The notes under the pieces were generated by a model, which was given only the letters and a program-made list of their open reading frames with translations, made no database searches and had not been told where the DNA came from. A program made the translations under genes and the position numbers. 64,000 nucleotides of DNA, from positions 308,174-372,173 of the IMG/VR virus record IMGVR_UViG_3300043410_001892. One strand, 5' to 3'. Of the stretch, positions 16,840-46,190 are shown in pieces; within the stretch, counting starts at the first letter, position 1; the number at the start of each line of letters is the position of its first letter.

Positions 16840-17384
16840 AACGTTTTGTTTACCTGTTCCCAGTTTATTATTTTCCATTGATTTTCTAAATACTTTTGTT
16901 TATCTGATTGATAGTCTAGTGCCCATGCATGTTCCCACCAGTCAACTAATAATACAATGTCTTTTTTAATAGCATGGTTAGTTATAGTTTTAATTTGTCC
17001 ATTTTTAGCAAGATAGACCCAACCACTTCCTTGTATGCCCATTGCTACTTTTAAAAACTCTTCTTTGAATTTATCAAAGGTTTTATAATGGGTTTCAATG
17101 AGCTCAAGTGCCTTGCCAACTGGCTTGTTTAGTTTACCAGTTGACTCTTGATATTGCTGGAACAAAATGTTGTGTAAAAATACACCTGCTTCGTTAAACA
17201 CCGGATCACCTTCACCTGCATTATACCGTTTTGCGTATGTTTTAGCAAGATGTTCGTAATGGTAATCTAATGTTTCTTTTGATATAGCAGGACTTAACTC
17301 ATTCATCCCGTATGGCAGGGCATCTATTTTTAAAGATGCCGGTCTACCTTCAGTTATAAATTGTTTAATGAAGCTATAACTCAT
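16836..17384 (-). CDS. sod: Fe/Mn superoxide dismutase
   Basis: LPY...L.P.IS.ETL.YHY..H, HN..F, GSGW..L, D.WEHA; ATGA-coupled to the nrdA stop. Confidence 0.9.
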   Translation of the reverse strand: MSYSFIKQFITEGRPASLKIDALPYGMNELSPAISKETLDYHYEHLAKTYAKRYNAGEGDPVFNEAGVFLHNILFQQYQESTGKLNKPVGKALELIETHYKTFDKFKEEFLKVAMGIQGSGWVYLAKNGQIKTITNHAIKKDIVLLVDWWEHAWALDYQSDKQKYLENQWKIINWEQVNKTL

Positions 17385-19696
17385 AGCTTGCAAGCCTCGC
17401 ATGATTCATCTTCTTCTTCAATAATTGCACTAGGTAAATCAATTTCAACTTCTTCTTTGCTACCAGTTTTGTCAATTAAACTATAGTAGAATGTCTTAAT
17501 ACCCCAATAGTGCCCTAACATTAAGTTTTTAGCAATTAGTGTAGTTGGTATCTTTCTACCTGGAAAGTGTTTTGGAGAATAGAATGTATCAGTACTAATT
17601 GATTGATCAATGTATGCAGCTAATACAGCCGCAGTTTTCAAATAACCAACACAATCAGTTTGTTCCCACATAAGTTGATATTTGTTTTTCAATTTATGAT
17701 ACTCAGGAACTACTTGTGTAAGTGAACCAGCTTTTGATTCTTTAGTTTGAATAAGCTGCATAGGCATTGCAATACCATTTGTAGAATTGATCACAACACT
17801 TGAACTTTCAACTGGAGCAATAGCACCTACTGTAGCATTTCTTACACCATATTGTTTCATTTCAGTACGTAGTGTTTCCCATGGTAATTCTGGAGTAAAG
17901 TCAGTTAAGTCATTAGCACCGTCTGCACGTAATTCCCATGGAAAGATACCTTGGCCATAACGTGTTTCTGCACTATGTCTGCAAGGACCACGTTCTTTAG
18001 CTAATTCAACTGACATTTCAGTTAAGTAGAAAGTTTGGTGTTCAATCCAGCTTTTAACTTCTGCCAATGCATCAGCATCTCCGTATTTAAAGTTACGTTT
18101 TGCATGCCAATATGCTAAGTTAGTAATACCAATACCTAACGGTCGTATTTCTTGATTGCTTTCATAACTATGTACAGACAAGAAATCTTGATAATCTAAG
18201 ATATTGTTTAAGCTGCGATGTAAAATACGGCAAGCTCTGCGCATATCTTCTGGATTACGGAATGCTCCCCAGTTCATAGACCCCAACGTACACAACGCTA
18301 TGCGTCCACTTGGATCATCCAATCGTTTAAATGCTTTTGTGGGGAGCAATATTTCTTGACATAAGTTACTTTGGTAAATTGTGTGAAAGTACGGATCAAA
18401 TGGTCCTTGCTTGATTACATTGTCAATGAACACTAAGTAAATACGGCCAGTGTCAGTGCGTTCTTTTAAGAGACCACCTTTGAACACCTCCTCGGCTGAC
18501 ATAGTTTTCTTCCGTAGCGTTTTATCTTGCTCATACTGGGTGTAGAGCTTTTCGAACAATAATGTATCAGTGTAAAACGCTTCATATAAGTCTGGTACTT
18601 CATTAGGATCAAAAAATGTTATGTTTTCTTTGTTTTTGAACCTACGCCAAAAGAATGCGTTTAATACAACGCTGTAATCTAAATGACGCACTCGTGTTTC
18701 ATCTGTTCCTTGATTGTTTTTAAGTACGATCAAGTCATCAAATTGATAATGCCAAATTGGAAATGTTATAGTTGCGCTTGCATTGCGTATGCCGCCTTGC
18801 GAGCAACTGCGTAAATCTCCAAACCATTTCTTTAAAAATGGAATCATTCCAGTATGCATGATTTCGCCACCGCGAATTGGGGAGCCCAAGGGGCGTAGTC
18901 GACCAATTTCTAATCCAATCCCCGCACGTTTACTGGCATATTTTGCCATCATTTCACCGCTTGCAAAAATAGAGTCAAGATCATCATCACTACGAATAAG
19001 TACGCAGGAGCTAAACTGTTTAGTTGGTGTGCCAAGCCCAGCAAGAACGGGTGTAGCAAGAGTAAATAAGCCATCGGATGCAGCATTATAATATTCCTTA
19101 ATATATTTCATTCTCGCAGTAGCAGGTTCTTCTTTATGGAAGACTGTTGCAGCAGCAATCATATATCTTACTTGTGGAGTTTCGTAAATATCTTTAGTAG
19201 CACGATTGCGTACTAAGTATTTTTCGATAAGTTGTTCAATAGCAGCATATGAGTAGGTTTCATCTTTTGAATGATCAAGCATGTCATTCATTTTATTCCA
19301 TTCTTCAACAGAATACCAATCAAGTAATTCTGAAGTGTATAGTCCAACTTCAATATTCTTTTTAACTATTGTATATAGATGTGGTGGTTCATATTGACCA
19401 TAGACATCTTTTCGTAGCATGGACAACCTTTGTTTACCTGCTACATATTGATAATTTGTATGACCTACATCAGGATTAGCGTCAACATCAATTAAGTTAA
19501 CAATTGCCCTTAATGTAATTTCGTCAATTTCTTGTGTAGTAATATTATCATAAAATTGTGGTTGGCTTTTGATTTCGATCATTGATTGACTAACATCTGC
19601 AATTCCACTGCAAATCTTTGCAATTTGAGCTTGCCATTTTTCGATTGTAAGATCGGCACAAATTCCGTTGCGTTTAATAACTTTTATTTTATTCAT
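17381..19696 (-). CDS. nrdA: Ribonucleotide reductase class Ia alpha subunit (with ATP cone)
   Basis: VIKRNG ATP cone, TPVLAG, FSSCVL, SCSQGGIR, SNLCQEI, APVESSS, KT.YY, C-terminal CEACKL. Confidence 0.96.
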   Translation of the reverse strand: MNKIKVIKRNGICADLTIEKWQAQIAKICSGIADVSQSMIEIKSQPQFYDNITTQEIDEITLRAIVNLIDVDANPDVGHTNYQYVAGKQRLSMLRKDVYGQYEPPHLYTIVKKNIEVGLYTSELLDWYSVEEWNKMNDMLDHSKDETYSYAAIEQLIEKYLVRNRATKDIYETPQVRYMIAAATVFHKEEPATARMKYIKEYYNAASDGLFTLATPVLAGLGTPTKQFSSCVLIRSDDDLDSIFASGEMMAKYASKRAGIGLEIGRLRPLGSPIRGGEIMHTGMIPFLKKWFGDLRSCSQGGIRNASATITFPIWHYQFDDLIVLKNNQGTDETRVRHLDYSVVLNAFFWRRFKNKENITFFDPNEVPDLYEAFYTDTLLFEKLYTQYEQDKTLRKKTMSAEEVFKGGLLKERTDTGRIYLVFIDNVIKQGPFDPYFHTIYQSNLCQEILLPTKAFKRLDDPSGRIALCTLGSMNWGAFRNPEDMRRACRILHRSLNNILDYQDFLSVHSYESNQEIRPLGIGITNLAYWHAKRNFKYGDADALAEVKSWIEHQTFYLTEMSVELAKERGPCRHSAETRYGQGIFPWELRADGANDLTDFTPELPWETLRTEMKQYGVRNATVGAIAPVESSSVVINSTNGIAMPMQLIQTKESKAGSLTQVVPEYHKLKNKYQLMWEQTDCVGYLKTAAVLAAYIDQSISTDTFYSPKHFPGRKIPTTLIAKNLMLGHYWGIKTFYYSLIDKTGSKEEVEIDLPSAIIEEEDESCEACKL

Positions 19697-19872: not shown

Positions 19873-21459
19873 TTATGATATAGCTGAATATTTGTATGTA
19901 AATATACCCGAATCAGCTGTATATGTATTAAGGTAATTTAATGATATATTGTTATTTAGAACAGAAGCACTAAATTCCAATAATGTACTATTACTAGTTG
20001 TTCCAGTACAAGTGTAATCATCAACAACAGATAACGTTAATGATGTAGGATTTGGCGGAACATATATTGTAATAGTTCCTTGTCTGTTAAGATGATTACT
20101 TTTATAGGAGTAATCGATTGTGTATGTAACATCCCATGATCCAATTGAACCTCCTTCTGAATCAGTTGGAATTGGGAATCTAACTAATGATGTAGAAACC
20201 CCTACTACTGAAATAGTAGTATTAACTGTGTTTGTGCTGTACTCAACATGTCCTACTGCTACTGGGATAAATCTTGGTAAGGACAAAGATGTACTCGCCA
20301 TTGCAATAGCTCTTGATGATCTTAAATTTACAATTGAATTACCAACATCGTTAAAGTAAATTTGTGGATAATACGGCATTGTGTCTAAACCACCGACATG
20401 CTTCATTGATACATTGGCAATTGAGTTGTTAGATCCGTTATCTATAAACACACCTTGTTTAGTAATATCAGTAAACGTAGCATTTGTAATCTGTGTATTA
20501 AATGGTCCATTTGTACTTAAACCATTTCCTAAATTAACTGCAAAGTTACATATTGAAACTGTTAAATTAGTAAATGTGTTATTTGATGCACCAACATCAC
20601 CGTAAACTCCTGAATGATAGTTATTAATGGTAATATTGTTGAATACGTTATTAGATGAATTTTTTAGGTAAACTCCATTATGATCATTAAAGAAACCTGC
20701 AGTCCAACTTCCTGACATTTTTAAATCTTCAAATTTACTATCAGATACATTTGTAGCATTTATACCAGCATTAGTACCATTTGGTGATTTAAGCGTCATC
20801 CCTTGAATTGTAATAAATCTTGGGTTATTTGGTGATTCAAGTGAATCAACATCTGATACAAATCTAAATACGTCACTAGTATGTATATTTTGAATGATTG
20901 TTTTATCTATTCCTGCACCTATGATTGTTGTATAACTTGGTAATACAAGTGCATTAGTAATTTTATAAATACCAGCTGGCAAACGAAGAGTTACACGAGT
21001 TGAAATTCCATCGGCAGTGTTAAGGAATGATTTATTAGCAATTGGATTTGAAAACAATTGGTTAATTGCACGTTGTAGTAATGGAGTGTTATCAACTAAC
21101 CCATCCCCAACTGCACCAAAGTCAGCAGCCGATATTGAGTCATCAAGTTTTGATTGTATTGTTCTTGAAATAGGAAATGCTGCAGACGGACCAGTTACGA
21201 TTGGTGATCCTGCTGTTGCTCTATATGTATAAGGTAATAGAGAAATTAAGTTACCAGTAGTAGATGATATATCGCGTGAGGTTAATATTTTAGTTTTACC
21301 TATATAAGGTGCACCTTCTGCAATAGATCCGTTGCCAATGAACAACTCTTGTGTATCAATTGCCCATCCCATTTCGCCAGACGCTAGTTGCGGAAATCCA
21401 GTTTCGCTATTAGCTTTACCTCGACGTATTTGAATTTTTGAAACTTGGTAAACTGCCAT
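19873..21459 (-). CDS. Tail spike-like protein with right-handed beta-helix (pectate lyase 3-like)
   Basis: Mtd-like N-term (IQIRRG...PQLASGE.GWAID..LFIG); DFGAVGDG..DNT..LQRAI; PAGIYKI; Asn-rich beta-helix. Confidence 0.8.
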   Translation of the reverse strand: MAVYQVSKIQIRRGKANSETGFPQLASGEMGWAIDTQELFIGNGSIAEGAPYIGKTKILTSRDISSTTGNLISLLPYTYRATAGSPIVTGPSAAFPISRTIQSKLDDSISAADFGAVGDGLVDNTPLLQRAINQLFSNPIANKSFLNTADGISTRVTLRLPAGIYKITNALVLPSYTTIIGAGIDKTIIQNIHTSDVFRFVSDVDSLESPNNPRFITIQGMTLKSPNGTNAGINATNVSDSKFEDLKMSGSWTAGFFNDHNGVYLKNSSNNVFNNITINNYHSGVYGDVGASNNTFTNLTVSICNFAVNLGNGLSTNGPFNTQITNATFTDITKQGVFIDNGSNNSIANVSMKHVGGLDTMPYYPQIYFNDVGNSIVNLRSSRAIAMASTSLSLPRFIPVAVGHVEYSTNTVNTTISVVGVSTSLVRFPIPTDSEGGSIGSWDVTYTIDYSYKSNHLNRQGTITIYVPPNPTSLTLSVVDDYTCTGTTSNSTLLEFSASVLNNNISLNYLNTYTADSGIFTYKYSAIS

Positions 21460-27312: not shown

Positions 27313-29610
27313 TTATCTAGCTATCTCAGTAATTCTCATCCATAGGGCAGTTGATGAGTTTGTAATAGTTATATTATCATCTGCACTATCTCTACGAACC
27401 CCAACAGTAATAGACTTTGCAGTTACGTTTGTGTTTGTGTATCTACCAGTTAAGGGAAATAGAGCACCTGTTCTAAAACTTTCGTTGCTCTTTGTCATCT
27501 GCCGACTGTAGGTAATTTCAGCTCCATCTACTTTAATACGAGAAAAATAGCTGTCTGTACCGGCACCGCCTGTATCAGATGCTGCTGAATATGCAGCCAC
27601 GTGAACATGAATAATTAGATAACTTGAACTACTCGATGGCGTATAACTATAGGTGATAAAATCTGTATCACTATTGCTAGTAGCTACTGTTGTCGTATTA
27701 ACAGTAAATTCTGTATTGCTTAACATAGTATCTTTAATAATCTGCCCAGCTCTATAAGAACCTGGTAGTACAAACCCGGCGGTCGCTAGATTACCAGTGG
27801 TATCAATCGCTGCTTTTACCGATCCACCTGTTTCGTTTAGATTATATACAAATCGTAGTAACTGTCCACTTAGAACACTAAATTGTCCATTCCAACTATC
27901 AAGCGCAAAGTTAGTATTATTGGCATAATACAGTAAGAGACCAGGTGTGTCTGTACTTCCGTTATCTAAAGTAATATCACCGGTTGCATATCCAGTCTTA
28001 GTAAATGTATTAGATCCAAAGTTATTAAGACCGGTAGTTCTTAAACCTGCTAATGTACCAACACTTGTTAAACTACTATTAACAACATTGTTTCCTAATG
28101 TCGTACCAGACAACGCAGACGTGCCTGCAATATAATATGCCATTCCAGCATCAATATCAATGTTATTTCCAACAAAGATATTAGCGGATACACCTAGTGT
28201 CCCTGTTATATTAACGGTATTAGATATGTGATTATATGTTGAACCACCAGTGCCGCGAGTAAATTGAATATAGCCATTGGAAGTAAGTGCAGATAGAGTT
28301 CCAACACTTGTTAAACTTGAACCAACTACGGTTGAGTTTAATGATGTTCCAGTTAAGGTCGTCGCTGCTGCGGTAACAGTTTTACTTTCACCTAATGATA
28401 TTTGTGTACCATTAATATAGAATAAGCTATTGGCTAATTTAGCATTACTAATACTACCAGCTAACATTGTATTTGTTACGGTTCCTGTATCTGTAGTATA
28501 AACACCATTAGTTACAGTTGCAGCATTGCCAGATGATGTAATGTAACCACTATCATTTGTAAACGCGCTTAACGTTGTAGGTTTATTAGTTAGATTATTA
28601 TAATCAGTAGTACCAGCTGGTCCTGTAAGTCCTTGTGGACCTTGATCTCCAGTATCACCCTTAGGTCCCTGTATGCCCTGAATTCCTTGTGCACCAGTTG
28701 CCCCAGTTGCCCCAGTGTCACCTGTAAGTCCTTGTGGTCCAGTTAACCCAGTATCACCCTTAGGTCCCTGTATGCCTTGAATTCCTTGTGGTCCAGTTGC
28801 TCCAGTATCACCTTTAAGTCCTTGTGCACCAGTTGCTCCAGTATCACCTTTAAGTCCTTGTGGTCCAGTTAAACCAGTATCGCCCTTAGGTCCCTGTATG
28901 CCTTGTGCACCAGTTGCACCAGTTGCACCAGTATCGCCTTTAAGTCCTTGTATGCCTTGTATACCTTGCGGGCCAGTTGCCCCAGTTGCGCCTGTATCAC
29001 CTTTGAGTCCTTGCGGTCCAGTTGCCCCAGTTGCGCCTGTAGCACCGGTTGGGCCAACAATAGGTCCAATGTAATCCCATTGTCCAAGTGTTAAATTCCA
29101 AAACCATAGTGCACCGTTTACATGTGGTAATATGCCAGTAGTAACAATCCAACCGTGACCTGCATAATCATTTAAATTAGTCGGAACTGCAGGTAGTGCT
29201 GATTCAGTTGCAACTGTTCCTTGGAGCTGTACACTAATACCTTGTGCACCAGTAGCTCCTGTGTCACCTTTTGGTCCTTGCGGTCCAGTTGCGCCTGTAG
29301 CACCGGTTGCACCAGTAACGCCTGCAGGACCTTGAATTCCTTGTACACCTTGTGGTCCTGCTGGGACAGCAGCCCATAATACAGTAGTACCATTAGTTTG
29401 TAAAAAATTACCACTTTGATTGGCTTGATCTGGATAACTAGCAGTACCACTACCGCTACCACTAATAATTATACCACCAGGAGTTATACCGTCTGATACT
29501 CTAATAGTATTACTTTCACTATCATACCAAAGACGATTTAATTGCCCAATACGTGTATTACCGTCGTTATAATCTCGATAACTAGTAAAAAAATCTTGTG
29601 TGAATGCCAC
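27313..29610 (-). CDS. Collagen-containing tail fibre protein
   Basis: Two Gly-X-Y blocks, SSLTSVGTL repeats; N-term LWYD....RVSDG.TPGG shared with 9002..11056. Confidence 0.85.
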
Positions 29611-44108: not shown

Positions 44109-44341
44109 CAGAAGTTTCAGATAAGAGTGTATGGTGTAATGAAATATCGTTAGATGATGCTCGATTATATCTGTTATTCTTAAATCATCGAGGACATAAA
44201 GATTGGCGATTTCCTACAGCATTAGAACGAATGATGCTTCCAGAGTTTTCAAAAACAGGAGGGTATTGGTATTCATTTGACCTTGATAGCACTAACATGG
44301 CATCTAAAAAATATACGCTAGTTCCAGTTCGAGATTGCTAA
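44105..44341 (+). CDS. Array A gene 2
   Basis: GHKDWRFPT...LVPVRD. Confidence 0.75.
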   Translation: MTEVSDKSVWCNEISLDDARLYLLFLNHRGHKDWRFPTALERMMLPEFSKTGGYWYSFDLDSTNMASKKYTLVPVRDC

Positions 44342-44349
44342 ATAATAGT

Positions 44350-44607
44350 ATGAAAATAGAAGAATTACTAACAGAACTTACGTTTAAGGGCTCGCAATGC
44401 ACTAAAGACTGCAGTGGTCACGAAGCAGGATTTAATCACCAAGTAAGAAAAGGTACTTCAAGTGACTCATATAGTCCTCATAGTCCTAGTTTTAATAAGG
44501 GTGCAGCTATTGCAAGGGCAGATCGAACTGTAACTAGAGCTCCTCAGCCTCGCGACAAAGGTAGATTTGCTGCTAGACCAAAGCCAAGAACTAAGAAATC
44601 TAAATAG
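44350..44607 (+). CDS. Hypothetical protein with capsid-targeting-like N-terminus
   Basis: MKIEELLTE; CT.DCSGH.AG...SF..G; CTAAATA upstream. Confidence 0.7.
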   Translation: MKIEELLTELTFKGSQCTKDCSGHEAGFNHQVRKGTSSDSYSPHSPSFNKGAAIARADRTVTRAPQPRDKGRFAARPKPRTKKSK

Positions 44608-44769
44608 GCCCCGCTGTGCAAGTGTGTGATATACTTATATATATGCGCATGCTTGCACGTTCAAAAAAATTTCAATTTAATCAAGTCGTATACATTGACA
44701 ATGCACACATATATGTGTATTATAACAGTTTTTAACATAGACCCCGCTGTACACATATAGGAGAAAACA

Positions 44770-44973
44770 ATGGCAGACGATTTTGAATCAAGAGTACAAT
44801 TGTCATCAGGTTGTTTGATGTACGTTCGTACACAGCACGATGATGATCGATTAGTAGTGTTTGCATTTAAGCACGATGAGTTTAGATGTGATTTCCAAAT
44901 ATTTTATGACGATTGTAGTGACGAATTTAAAAGCTGGGTAGAACAGCCAGTTATCACTGCTGCTTCGTTTTAG
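44770..44973 (+). CDS. Hypothetical protein
   Basis: AGGAG RBS, own promoter; flanked by motif copies. Confidence 0.7.
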   Translation: MADDFESRVQLSSGCLMYVRTQHDDDRLVVFAFKHDEFRCDFQIFYDDCSDEFKSWVEQPVITAASF

Positions 44974-45007
44974 GCCCCGCTGTACACATAATTGGTAAAA
45001 TCAATAA

Positions 45008-45048
45008 TTGACATTTGAGTTTAGTTACTGTATAGTATACGGTAACTA
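45008..45048 (+). promoter_or_regulatory. sigma70 promoter with overlapping palindrome
   Basis: TTGACA-17-TATAGT; TAGTTACTGTATA-G-TATACGGTAACTA inverted repeat at 45022-45048. Confidence 0.75.
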
Positions 45049-45410
45049 CAGAAGGTGTCGCGCAAACCACATAGTAACTGCGCCCTATAACTGGACAACT
45101 GTATCACAGTGAAGGAATTGTTGAGCTGTAGCAACGACATAACCACCTACCCATTTGGATGAACATGAGATGTACCTTTACAAAACTCATTACAGGTTAT
45201 GGCCCCGCTGTACACATAAGGTTAAAAGAAGGAGTAGCACTCCTACGATTGTATATGCAGTTAGCATTGTGTATACAGTCCGCCGTCATATTTACCAGGA
45301 CGGAGCTCGAGGTACCGGATGACCGCCTCTGTAATGCTCTAATGCTAAGACATGAAAAACTCAACAAATGTTCGCCATTGGCCTTTACGGGCCAATGTGA
45401 CTTCTTAATC
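45043..45410 (+). ncRNA. Candidate large structured non-coding RNA
   Basis: Follows a strong promoter with no credible ORF; at least 8 stems and a potential 8-bp pseudoknot (see findings). Confidence 0.6.
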
Positions 45411-45533
45411 TAACAAAATATTCAAAGAAATAAAAATTCAAATTAAAATAATGAATATGAGCGAATGCGAATTTGAATTATTTTAATTTGTTTGTGAGCT
45501 GTAAGCTCGCAATTTTACTATTAGTGAGGAAAT

Positions 45534-45767
45534 ATGATTGAAATATCTGACAAAACTGCATGCAGGAAATTAGGATACAATGAAGCATGGCTGTATTGCT
45601 TAACTTTAAACCATAATGGACATAAAGATTGGCGTATGCCAGCTCAGTTTGATCATTATCAAGGTAACGACTGGCCAACTTCAACTTGGGTTGAAGTAAG
45701 TAACCCAAATAGTATTATAGATATCACTGATACTTTTGGAATAGTCCCAGTAAGAACTATTGATTAA
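45534..45767 (+). CDS. Array A gene 3
   Basis: YNEAWLYCLTL..NGHKDWRMP...IVPVR. Confidence 0.8.
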   Translation: MIEISDKTACRKLGYNEAWLYCLTLNHNGHKDWRMPAQFDHYQGNDWPTSTWVEVSNPNSIIDITDTFGIVPVRTID

Positions 45768-45833
45768 ATTATCATTTGTAAATTCTAAAAATTTATATTA
45801 CAATAATGTTTTTTAATAATCATGAGGTGCAAC

Positions 45834-46190
45834 ATGGCAAAAAAAGTTAAGTATAAATCAGCCGAAGATAAACGCCGTGCATTAGAAGCTGAAAAACAAT
45901 GGAAAGAAATGACTAAGACATATGGTCTTAGTGATAAGCCGGCTAATACAAAATCACTTAGAACAATCTCACAGAAAAAAACATTAAGTAATGTTGCACC
46001 AACATATAGAGGTAGTGATAGTAAACCTCCCAGTTTAGTTACAACTACTAAAGGTGGCGGCAGCAAAGTTACAGCTCCAAGATATACCGGTACTTTGATT
46101 AAAGGTATCGCAACGATGCATAAATCAAATGCCGTGCCAATTATTGACCAAGAGCAAGCAACTGAGATTTCACGGATGCGTAGAGGATGA
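45834..46190 (+). CDS. Conserved hypothetical phage protein
   Basis: YTGT.IKGIATMHKSNAVP......A.EIS.MRR. Confidence 0.75.
   Translation: MAKKVKYKSAEDKRRALEAEKQWKEMTKTYGLSDKPANTKSLRTISQKKTLSNVAPTYRGSDSKPPSLVTTTKGGGSKVTAPRYTGTLIKGIATMHKSNAVPIIDQEQATEISRMRRG

Follow-up and report, generated by a model that had tools for sequence, protein, structure and literature searches.

An extended two-domain Polynucleobacter-1 RNA in a jumbo phage, in T4-like phages and in freshwater bacterial islands

The question raised by this locus is what a near-consensus promoter is doing ahead of about 490 nucleotides that hold no convincing gene. The original prediction, made by reading the sequence, proposed an ornate structured RNA of some 370 nt, transcribed from this promoter and containing a pseudoknot, and, as an alternative, a primer RNA for an R-loop origin. 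The locus lies within a 64,000-nucleotide stretch of DNA, referred to here as the window and used for all coordinates unless a genome position is named, which is the final 64 kb (308,174-372,173) of a 372,173-bp IMG/VR record (IMGVR_UViG_3300043410_001892) with direct terminal repeats and 35% G+C. The source is a jumbo phage. Its genome carries 13 tRNA genes, 11 of them clustered at 258.9-264.3 kb, and a two-piece (permuted) tmRNA of betaproteobacterial type (genome approximately 273,638-274,062, minus strand; RF01850 at 113.5 bits and RF04321 at 116.6 bits), and this tmRNA indicates a betaproteobacterial host. The RNA locus is situated in a block of small plus-strand open reading frames without assigned function, 4-5 kb from a strand switch, and a PHROGs search of the reading frames neighbouring it in the window returned no function. 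Elsewhere in the window the minus strand holds three genes (17381-19696, 19873-21459 and 27313-29610), which encode an ATP-cone ribonucleotide reductase large subunit, a fibre-like protein with Mtd_N and a beta-helix of pectate-lyase type, and a protein with collagen repeats. An RNA identical to the window copy was found on a 171.6-kb viral contig (L167, IMGVR_UViG_3300047560_002175), indicating that the same phage or a near relative was assembled independently from another sample.

A search of the window with Rfam models identified a catalogued motif that had gone unrecognised in the original prediction. The covariance model of Polynucleobacter-1 (RF01718) matched the 5' part of the locus with a score of 61.1 bits (gathering score 37; E 1.5e-10, 64 kb searched). 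In the resulting alignment the helices of the model are formed by the window copy with a few non-standard pairs, the conserved loops GGAA, GCNGUAGC, GAC and CUAYCC are all present, and a degenerate search pattern for the motif matches the window copy as well. The 2010 description of Polynucleobacter-1 drew on metagenomes of freshwater and marine origin and on one Polynucleobacter genome; in that description the motif's 3' half was not always detected, the motif usually followed genes of the GOS11034 family, and no copy was present in any sequenced purified phage (Weinberg et al., PMC2864571). Our literature search found no later publication naming the motif. The window copy agrees with the description in its helices, its conserved loops, its freshwater habitat and its betaproteobacterial link. 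It differs in its surroundings, as the customary position downstream of a GOS11034-type gene, which is typical of the motif and not defining, was not found at the window. It also differs in its carriers, since the copies reported here reside in metagenome-assembled T4-like contigs and in a 372-kb jumbo phage. Models of tmRNA, RNase P RNA, group I and II introns, 6S RNA and SRP RNA gave no match at E ≤1 over 44400-46000, in agreement with the earlier judgement that the element is not a tRNA, tmRNA, RNase P RNA or intron. The GOLLD, ROOL, HEARO and OLE models found nothing in the window or in 11 homologous loci. The cow-rumen-2 model (RF02947) aligned with 45248-45357 at 21.7 bits (gathering score 66, E 0.37); this match was not reproduced in four homologous loci at E ≤10 and was taken as chance.

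Relatives were collected with a degenerate pattern built from invariant positions of the 5' domain, which yielded about 90 stretches of viral contigs and 41 stretches of bacterial genomes, the latter including a few chance matches. In every full-length copy aligned, conservation extends approximately 230-290 nt past the end of the Rfam model, and no Rfam 15 family covers this 3' extension in the 11 homologous loci scanned. The Polynucleobacter-1 family is consequently about three times longer than catalogued: the 141-nt motif is only the 5' third of a real unit of 370-430 nt. Covariation among the homologs, one of the checks proposed for the structured RNA, was strong. In the 3' domains of 36 phage and bacterial copies, paired cells made up 97.7% as compared with 83.3% after shuffling (RNAalifold, pair counts), and 17 of 28 pairs had changed on both sides. 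When the pseudoknot was included for 32 phage 3' domains, 94.8% of cells were paired as opposed to 77.0% in shuffled and 37-50% in slid controls, with both sides changed in 29 of 46 pairs.

A covariance model trained on these 32 phage 3' domains (R2), with the window copy and its identical twin on L167 left out, matched the window over 45223-45411 at full length (40.4 bits, E 2.8e-10), and this was the sole match across the 372-kb genome. With the same model each of the 25 full-length bacterial copies was recovered (50-80 bits), and the three truncated ones were missed. A model built jointly from bacterial and phage copies (R1) gave 16 bits (E 0.02) for the 3' domain of the window, and a sequence-only profile (nhmmer) of this domain did not find the window, so that homology of its 3' half rests on structure and short motifs. 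G-U pairs dominate some columns of the 3' domain alignments, which points to an RNA, or a single strand, of plus sense only. The window has a single occurrence of a 17-nt loop signature (GGTACNGNNNRACCGCC), with 0.00 expected. The two model matches, with E-values of 1.5e-10 and 2.8e-10, and this unique signature exclude a chance origin of the whole element, and the window RNA is a full-length member of the Polynucleobacter-1 family. It adds a new member, divergent and carried by a phage, to a known orphan family, and family membership, covariation that includes the pseudoknot and the lack of a conserved reading frame bear out the claim of an ornate, pseudoknotted structured RNA of some 370 nt.

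Nearly all of the stems listed in the original prediction are present where they were placed, and most correspond to helices of the family. CATAACC/GGTTATG (P4) and ATGAG/CTCAT (P6) are both helices of the Rfam model; AGGAGT/ACTCCT (P8), GAGC/GCTC (P13), GAGG/CCTC (P11) and the terminal hairpin map to helices that covary among relatives; and CCGTC/GACGG (P10) coincides with a hairpin that most relatives fold at the same position. One stem did not stand. The letters of TGTCG/CGACA (45056/45135) are there, yet the pairing overlaps three family helices and has no counterpart among relatives, for which reasons it is probably fortuitous. A separate candidate, a 5' pseudoknot between the leader and the P1 loop, scored 3.65 in an automated test against 3.49 for shuffles and remains tentative; the pairings seen by eye are GGU/ACC in the window, GAG/CUC and GUG/CAC in bacteria and UGCC/GGCA in phages.

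The 3' domain is composed of a long hairpin, a pseudoknot, a junction and a terminal hairpin, with an invariant junction loop (GGUAC..ACCGCC). The predicted 13-bp stem is helix P9, and the complementarity noted between its loop and AATGCTAA is the pseudoknot PK2; both are conserved and covary within the family. P9 is made from unrelated stem sequences in 37 of 37 sequences folded, and among relatives the pairing between its loop and a strand about 80 nt downstream takes at least eight sequence versions. Among the phage relatives, six of the seven PK2 pairs covary and 92.9% of cells are paired. The complementarity score of PK2 is 7.85 within molecules, 5.05 across molecules and 4.64 after shuffling, and the window loop scores 8.5 with its own partner strand versus at most 7.0 with the strands of other members. 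The pseudoknot strand and the terminal hairpin are each followed by a repeat unit (A and B). In all relatives the starts and ends of the two units match within one molecule and differ between lineages, the versions being AGCGAAAG, AUCGAAAG, ACCAAAAG, GGAGAAAG, GUGUCAAGU and AGGAUAAU, with AACAAA in the window. The two units are alike rather than complementary, and their behaviour is the concerted change of a direct repeat, not a helix. The window copy departs from its relatives in lacking helix P12, in having a genome-specific repeat as linker between its domains, where relatives have AGC(U/A)AAAA(U/A)GAG, and in having no GIY-YIG gene upstream.

Table 1. Positions of the RNA, its structural elements and its surroundings (window coordinates unless a genome position is given)
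Feature	Position	Strand	Remarks
Second near-consensus promoter	44695-44723		TTGACA, 17 nt, TATTAT; palindrome CACATATATGTG inside spacer; upstream of 67-aa ORF
67-aa ORF	44770-44973	+	Upstream of RNA; no family match
Sigma-70-type promoter	45008-45036	+	TTGACA 45008-45013, 17-nt spacer, TATAGT 45031-45036
Full-length extended Polynucleobacter-1 RNA	45043-45411	+	Two domains; approximately 370 nt
5' domain	45055-45199	+	RF01718 model positions 1-141 of 141
P1	45060-45064/45079-45083	+	5' domain
P2	45091-45097/45102-45109	+	5' domain
P3	45120-45123/45132-45135	+	Loop AGCUGUAG
P4	45138-45144/45195-45201	+	CATAACC/GGTTATG; outer helix of Rfam model
P5	45151-45152/45157-45158	+	Only 2 bp in window copy
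P6	45165-45169/45186-45190	+	ATGAG/CTCAT; present in Rfam model
Linker joining domains	45201-45221	+	One copy of genome-specific plus-strand repeat (GGCCCCGCTGTACACATAAGG); includes GGCCCCGCUG
3' domain	45223-45411	+	Approximately 190 nt; outside Rfam
P8	45230-45235/45239-45244	+	AGGAGT/ACTCCT
P9	45247-45259/45268-45280	+	13-bp stem of original prediction
PK2 pseudoknot	45261-45348	+	P9 loop 45261-45269 pairs with 45340-45348; core TTAGCATT (45261-45268)/AATGCTAA (45341-45348)
P10	45283-45287/45299-45303	+	CCGTC/GACGG
P13	45303-45306/45336-45339	+	GAGC/GCTC
P11	45309-45312/45326-45329	+	GAGG/CCTC; encloses conserved loop 45313-45325
Repeat unit A	45349-45372	+	After pseudoknot strand; ends in CUCAACAAA; changes in concert with unit B
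Terminal hairpin	45376-45383/45390-45397	+	CATTGGCC/GGCCAATG; flanked by units A and B
Repeat unit B	45398-45418	+	UGUGACU ... UCUAACAAAA; directly after terminal hairpin
AT-rich spacer	45419-45491	+	Inverted repeat AATTCAAATT/AATTTGAATT at 45435-45444/45470-45479; unconserved in family
Terminator-like hairpin with TTTTACTATT	45492-45522	+	Hairpin 45492-45512, then T-run
77-aa ORF	from 45534		Next ORF 3' of RNA, beyond terminator-like hairpin
Repeat RGRCCCCGCTGYAC...	44609, 44742, 44975, 45203, 47723, 53164, 59745; genome 9456-53400	+	
Second RNA copy, diverged	genome approximately 272,230-272,700	-	RF01718 28.7 bits, below threshold; approximately 950 nt from tmRNA gene

The claimed near-consensus promoter is present directly ahead of the RNA and agrees with the consensus at 11 of 12 positions, a quality reached by just two sites across 44300-46000. 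It predicts a transcription start at approximately 45042-45044, which is 1-3 nt 5' of the conserved ACUAC of the family. The AT-rich tract and inverted repeat of the original prediction also exist, but they lie 3' of the conserved RNA. Beyond them, the primary transcript probably ends at the terminator-like hairpin; this hairpin and its T-run predict a length of about 475 nt for the transcript, with conservation confined to 45043-45411. Contigs of lake metatranscriptomes, derived from relatives 90-95% alike, cover 45043-45216 and 45294-45421, and the exact window sequence was in none of the RNA runs searched. These contigs hint at transcription; they extend into flanking sequence and may be DNA carry-over.

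Examination of the homologous loci demonstrated that the two-domain RNA is common to many T4-like phages, to the jumbo phage and to integrative islands of freshwater Burkholderiales. A BLASTN search with the window RNA and one T4-like copy against 50,697 GenBank phage records gave no match, so that metagenomic phages and bacterial genomes are the only sources of the family known to date. In T4-like contigs the RNA is part of a module downstream of gp47 and gp46 that converges with baseplate-hub-like genes. Here it lies 3' of a 142-aa SegE-like GIY-YIG gene on the same strand (79 viral loci), and in 15 viral loci a 170-aa PDDEXK_15 nuclease gene is located upstream of it, again on the same strand. 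A survey anchored on gp46 detected the 3' domain in 55 of 78 T4-like loci, with 11 of the 78 too short to judge: it was found in all 35 loci that had enough flank and a gp46 identity of at least 78%, whereas among distant relatives, at 51-57% identity, it was found in 20 loci and absent in 12. The jumbo phage carries a second, diverged copy (Table 1), with a promoter-like site just upstream. The terminal hairpin and two repeat units of this copy (CUCACAUAAA and UCUACAUAAA) are visible, and its 3' domain was not found by our models.

Within Polynucleobacter, 9 of 101 species genomes carry the RNA in one or two copies each. The bacterial RNA stands beside a divergently oriented DUF6641 gene (33 loci), and in 15 loci it is followed on the same strand, after about 400 nt, by a gene for a 188-aa tyrosine recombinase that comprises just the catalytic domain. 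The jumbo phage genome has no DUF6641, the neighbour that is constant in bacteria. The predicted fold of DUF6641 (pLDDT 86) has no PDB match, retrieves from AlphaFold DB clusters only its own family and a weak HK97 gp10-like resemblance, and offers no RNA-binding clue; PADLOC and NCBIfam scans of the bacterial neighbours returned nothing informative past the recombinase. Two tandem islands are carried by Polynucleobacter sp. MWH-HuK1 (L214 and L215, contig positions 396,000-430,000), each with AAA-like genes, the 188-aa tyrosine recombinase, the RNA and DUF6641. As a side observation, the first of these islands contains metal-binding and ArsR-like cargo, and a haloacid-dehalogenase-like gene is duplicated at the island ends. 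Three bacterial copies are truncated (L181, L182 and L207), with breaks in the P7, P6 and P9 loops and DUF6641 still adjacent. They look like deletions or insertions, and the three different break points argue that no attachment site lies inside the RNA. Linkage to tRNA genes was considered and rejected as a family trait, as such genes are near the RNA in just 2 of 54 homologous loci. The RNA family is accessory, a cargo of mobile elements. Complete or isolate genomes are among its carriers (Limnohabitans sp. DCL3 and several Polynucleobacter), so that genetics may be possible if these are still cultured.

These results turn Polynucleobacter-1, since 2010 a short orphan Rfam motif known mainly from metagenomes, into a large pseudoknotted RNA that comprises two domains and covaries strongly. 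A whole T4-like lineage carries it in synteny; it is present in a tmRNA-encoding jumbo phage and recurs in Polynucleobacter, Limnohabitans and freshwater Burkholderiales related to them, in islands that bear a recombinase. The extended RNA thereby joins GOLLD, ROOL, OLE and HEARO as a large ornate RNA, with a full-length structure and candidate partners that can be tested. It resembles those RNAs in being large, in its multiple pseudoknots, its invariant unpaired nucleotides and its carriage by phages and prophage-like islands. GOLLD and ROOL are often found near tRNA and tmRNA genes, and one jumbo-phage copy likewise lies near such genes. The family differs from all four in having no sequence or model match to them and in being smaller, at approximately 370-430 nt.

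With regard to function, we consider it probable, with moderate confidence, that the full-length RNA is an independently promoted, stable molecule that acts in trans, through its fold, for its mobile element. In the proposed sequence of events the host RNA polymerase would make the RNA early, as a separate, stable, non-coding transcript. The folded RNA would act in trans, be it by binding proteins as a scaffold or decoy, by catalysis or by binding a ligand, and its action would benefit the mobile element that carries it; in this it would resemble other large ornate phage-associated RNAs such as GOLLD and ROOL. Two features are those of an independent gene, namely a promoter suitably spaced from the conserved 5' end and, downstream, a hairpin of terminator-like form. 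We infer the trans-acting mode by exclusion, no partner having been found.

Six other readings were weighed against a trans-acting RNA. We think it unlikely that the RNA is a cis-regulatory leader or riboswitch-like sensor in which alternative 3' pairing controls the genes that follow (the 77-aa reading frame in the window and the recombinase in the islands). Weinberg et al. scored the motif as possibly cis-regulatory (PMC2864571), and the bacterial copies have something of the look of an expression platform: CUCAG in unit A and GGCUCAG in the 3' strand of the terminal hairpin both complement the 5' strand CUGAG, and a same-strand recombinase gene comes next in the 15 loci described above, where a leader role is conceivable. 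In the T4-like phages, on the other hand, the RNA sits between convergent genes and so cannot be a leader of the genes that come next. The terminal hairpin lacks a U-tract, the window copy is divided from the next reading frame by a further, terminator-like hairpin, and two domains of about 400 nt far exceed the known leaders of this kind.

A further reading, which we hold to be improbable to a similar degree, makes the extended RNA a working partner (guide, scaffold or activator) of the adjacent nucleases and recombinase, which lack DNA-binding domains, or else a new ribozyme or self-assembling RNA. If the partnership with nucleases and recombinase were true, it would constitute a new class of RNA-dependent DNA-transaction system. 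Slightly harder to credit is a specific role as RNA cofactor or guide for the DNA-cutting or DNA-joining enzymes encoded alongside, to whose stand-alone catalytic domains it would lend target recognition or a scaffold, the whole forming a mobility or recombination module. What speaks for such a module is the neighbourhood. Stand-alone nuclease or recombinase genes, or both, adjoin the RNA in nearly all phage contigs and in 15 of the bacterial islands examined; they represent three unrelated catalytic domains without recognisable DNA-binding domains in different elements (the SegE-like GIY-YIG, PDDEXK_15 and tyrosine recombinase loci counted above), and the phage module comes after the recombination nuclease genes gp47 and gp46. 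The arrangement recalls the omega RNAs of IscB and TnpB and the bridge RNA of IS110, which are likewise structured RNAs of hundreds of nucleotides beside small nuclease or recombinase genes. It differs from them in its GIY-YIG, PD-(D/E)XK and tyrosine recombinase neighbours and in having no guide segment identified: no hypervariable guide-like stretch is evident, and the variable parts of the RNA are compensated stems. Neither jumbo-phage copy has a nuclease or recombinase gene of this sort alongside, the PDDEXK_15 homologue of that genome lying more than 200 kb from the RNA. Moreover, free-standing homing endonuclease genes often settle near conserved genes, and this habit would account for the linkage with no need for the RNA and the proteins to work together.

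We are more doubtful still that the RNA assembles with itself, with PK2 or units A and B serving as intermolecular contacts that build homo-oligomers like the GOLLD and ROOL cages or the packaging RNA ring of phi29. Covariation, which PK2 displays, is blind to whether a pairing is intra- or intermolecular, and the concerted, identical change of units A and B is unexplained by a simple helix. Large ornate phage RNAs are reported to form RNA-only complexes (PMC12286853). Against self-assembly, PK2 is sterically plausible within a single molecule, and no link to the virion or to packaging was found.

The primer RNA for an R-loop origin, whose transcript would hybridise to an AT-rich region and prime DNA synthesis, now appears very unlikely. 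Like ColE1 RNA II and T4 oriF and oriG, the locus has a promoter-driven non-coding transcript of several hundred nucleotides on a mobile replicon, with a strong promoter followed about 400 nt on by an AT-rich tract; the family inhabits replicating mobile elements, near recombination genes, and the minimum of the cumulative GC skew of the genome falls within the same 10-kb neighbourhood. However, the analysis lent no support to this alternative. The AT-rich tract is outside the conserved element and absent from the T4-like relatives. The skew check for an origin placed the minimum at the strand switch (window 37-42 kb), 4-8 kb from the RNA, and one genome holds two copies. The structure, in addition, is far more conserved than is known of those primers: pseudoknots and invariant loops maintained across phages and bacteria are not a known trait of R-loop primers.

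Least of all, to the point of being negligible, is the 84-aa reading frame 45159-45413 the product of the locus: it is open in the window, but among 54 family members, where conserved coding would have spoken against a non-coding RNA, the median open stretch in this frame is 34 codons, at least 60 codons are open in only 10, indels among relatives do not come in threes and helix substitutions are compensatory, all in keeping with the original view that no convincing gene is present.

A final observation concerns the repeat that serves as linker in the window copy of this trans-acting candidate. At least 14 copies of it occur in the jumbo phage genome, within two plus-strand, early-like blocks. 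PF00940, the family of the T7-like RNA polymerases for which the GGCCCCGCTG repeat might have been a promoter, was not found in the genome, and the controls likewise gave no signal. The RGRCCCCGCTGYAC... form is restricted to the plus strand, with 6 window matches against 0.26 expected. A role as processing site, cassette boundary or operator is conceivable. Its copies overlap stop codons and stand ahead of a ribosome-binding site and ATG, or ahead of promoter and hairpin modules.
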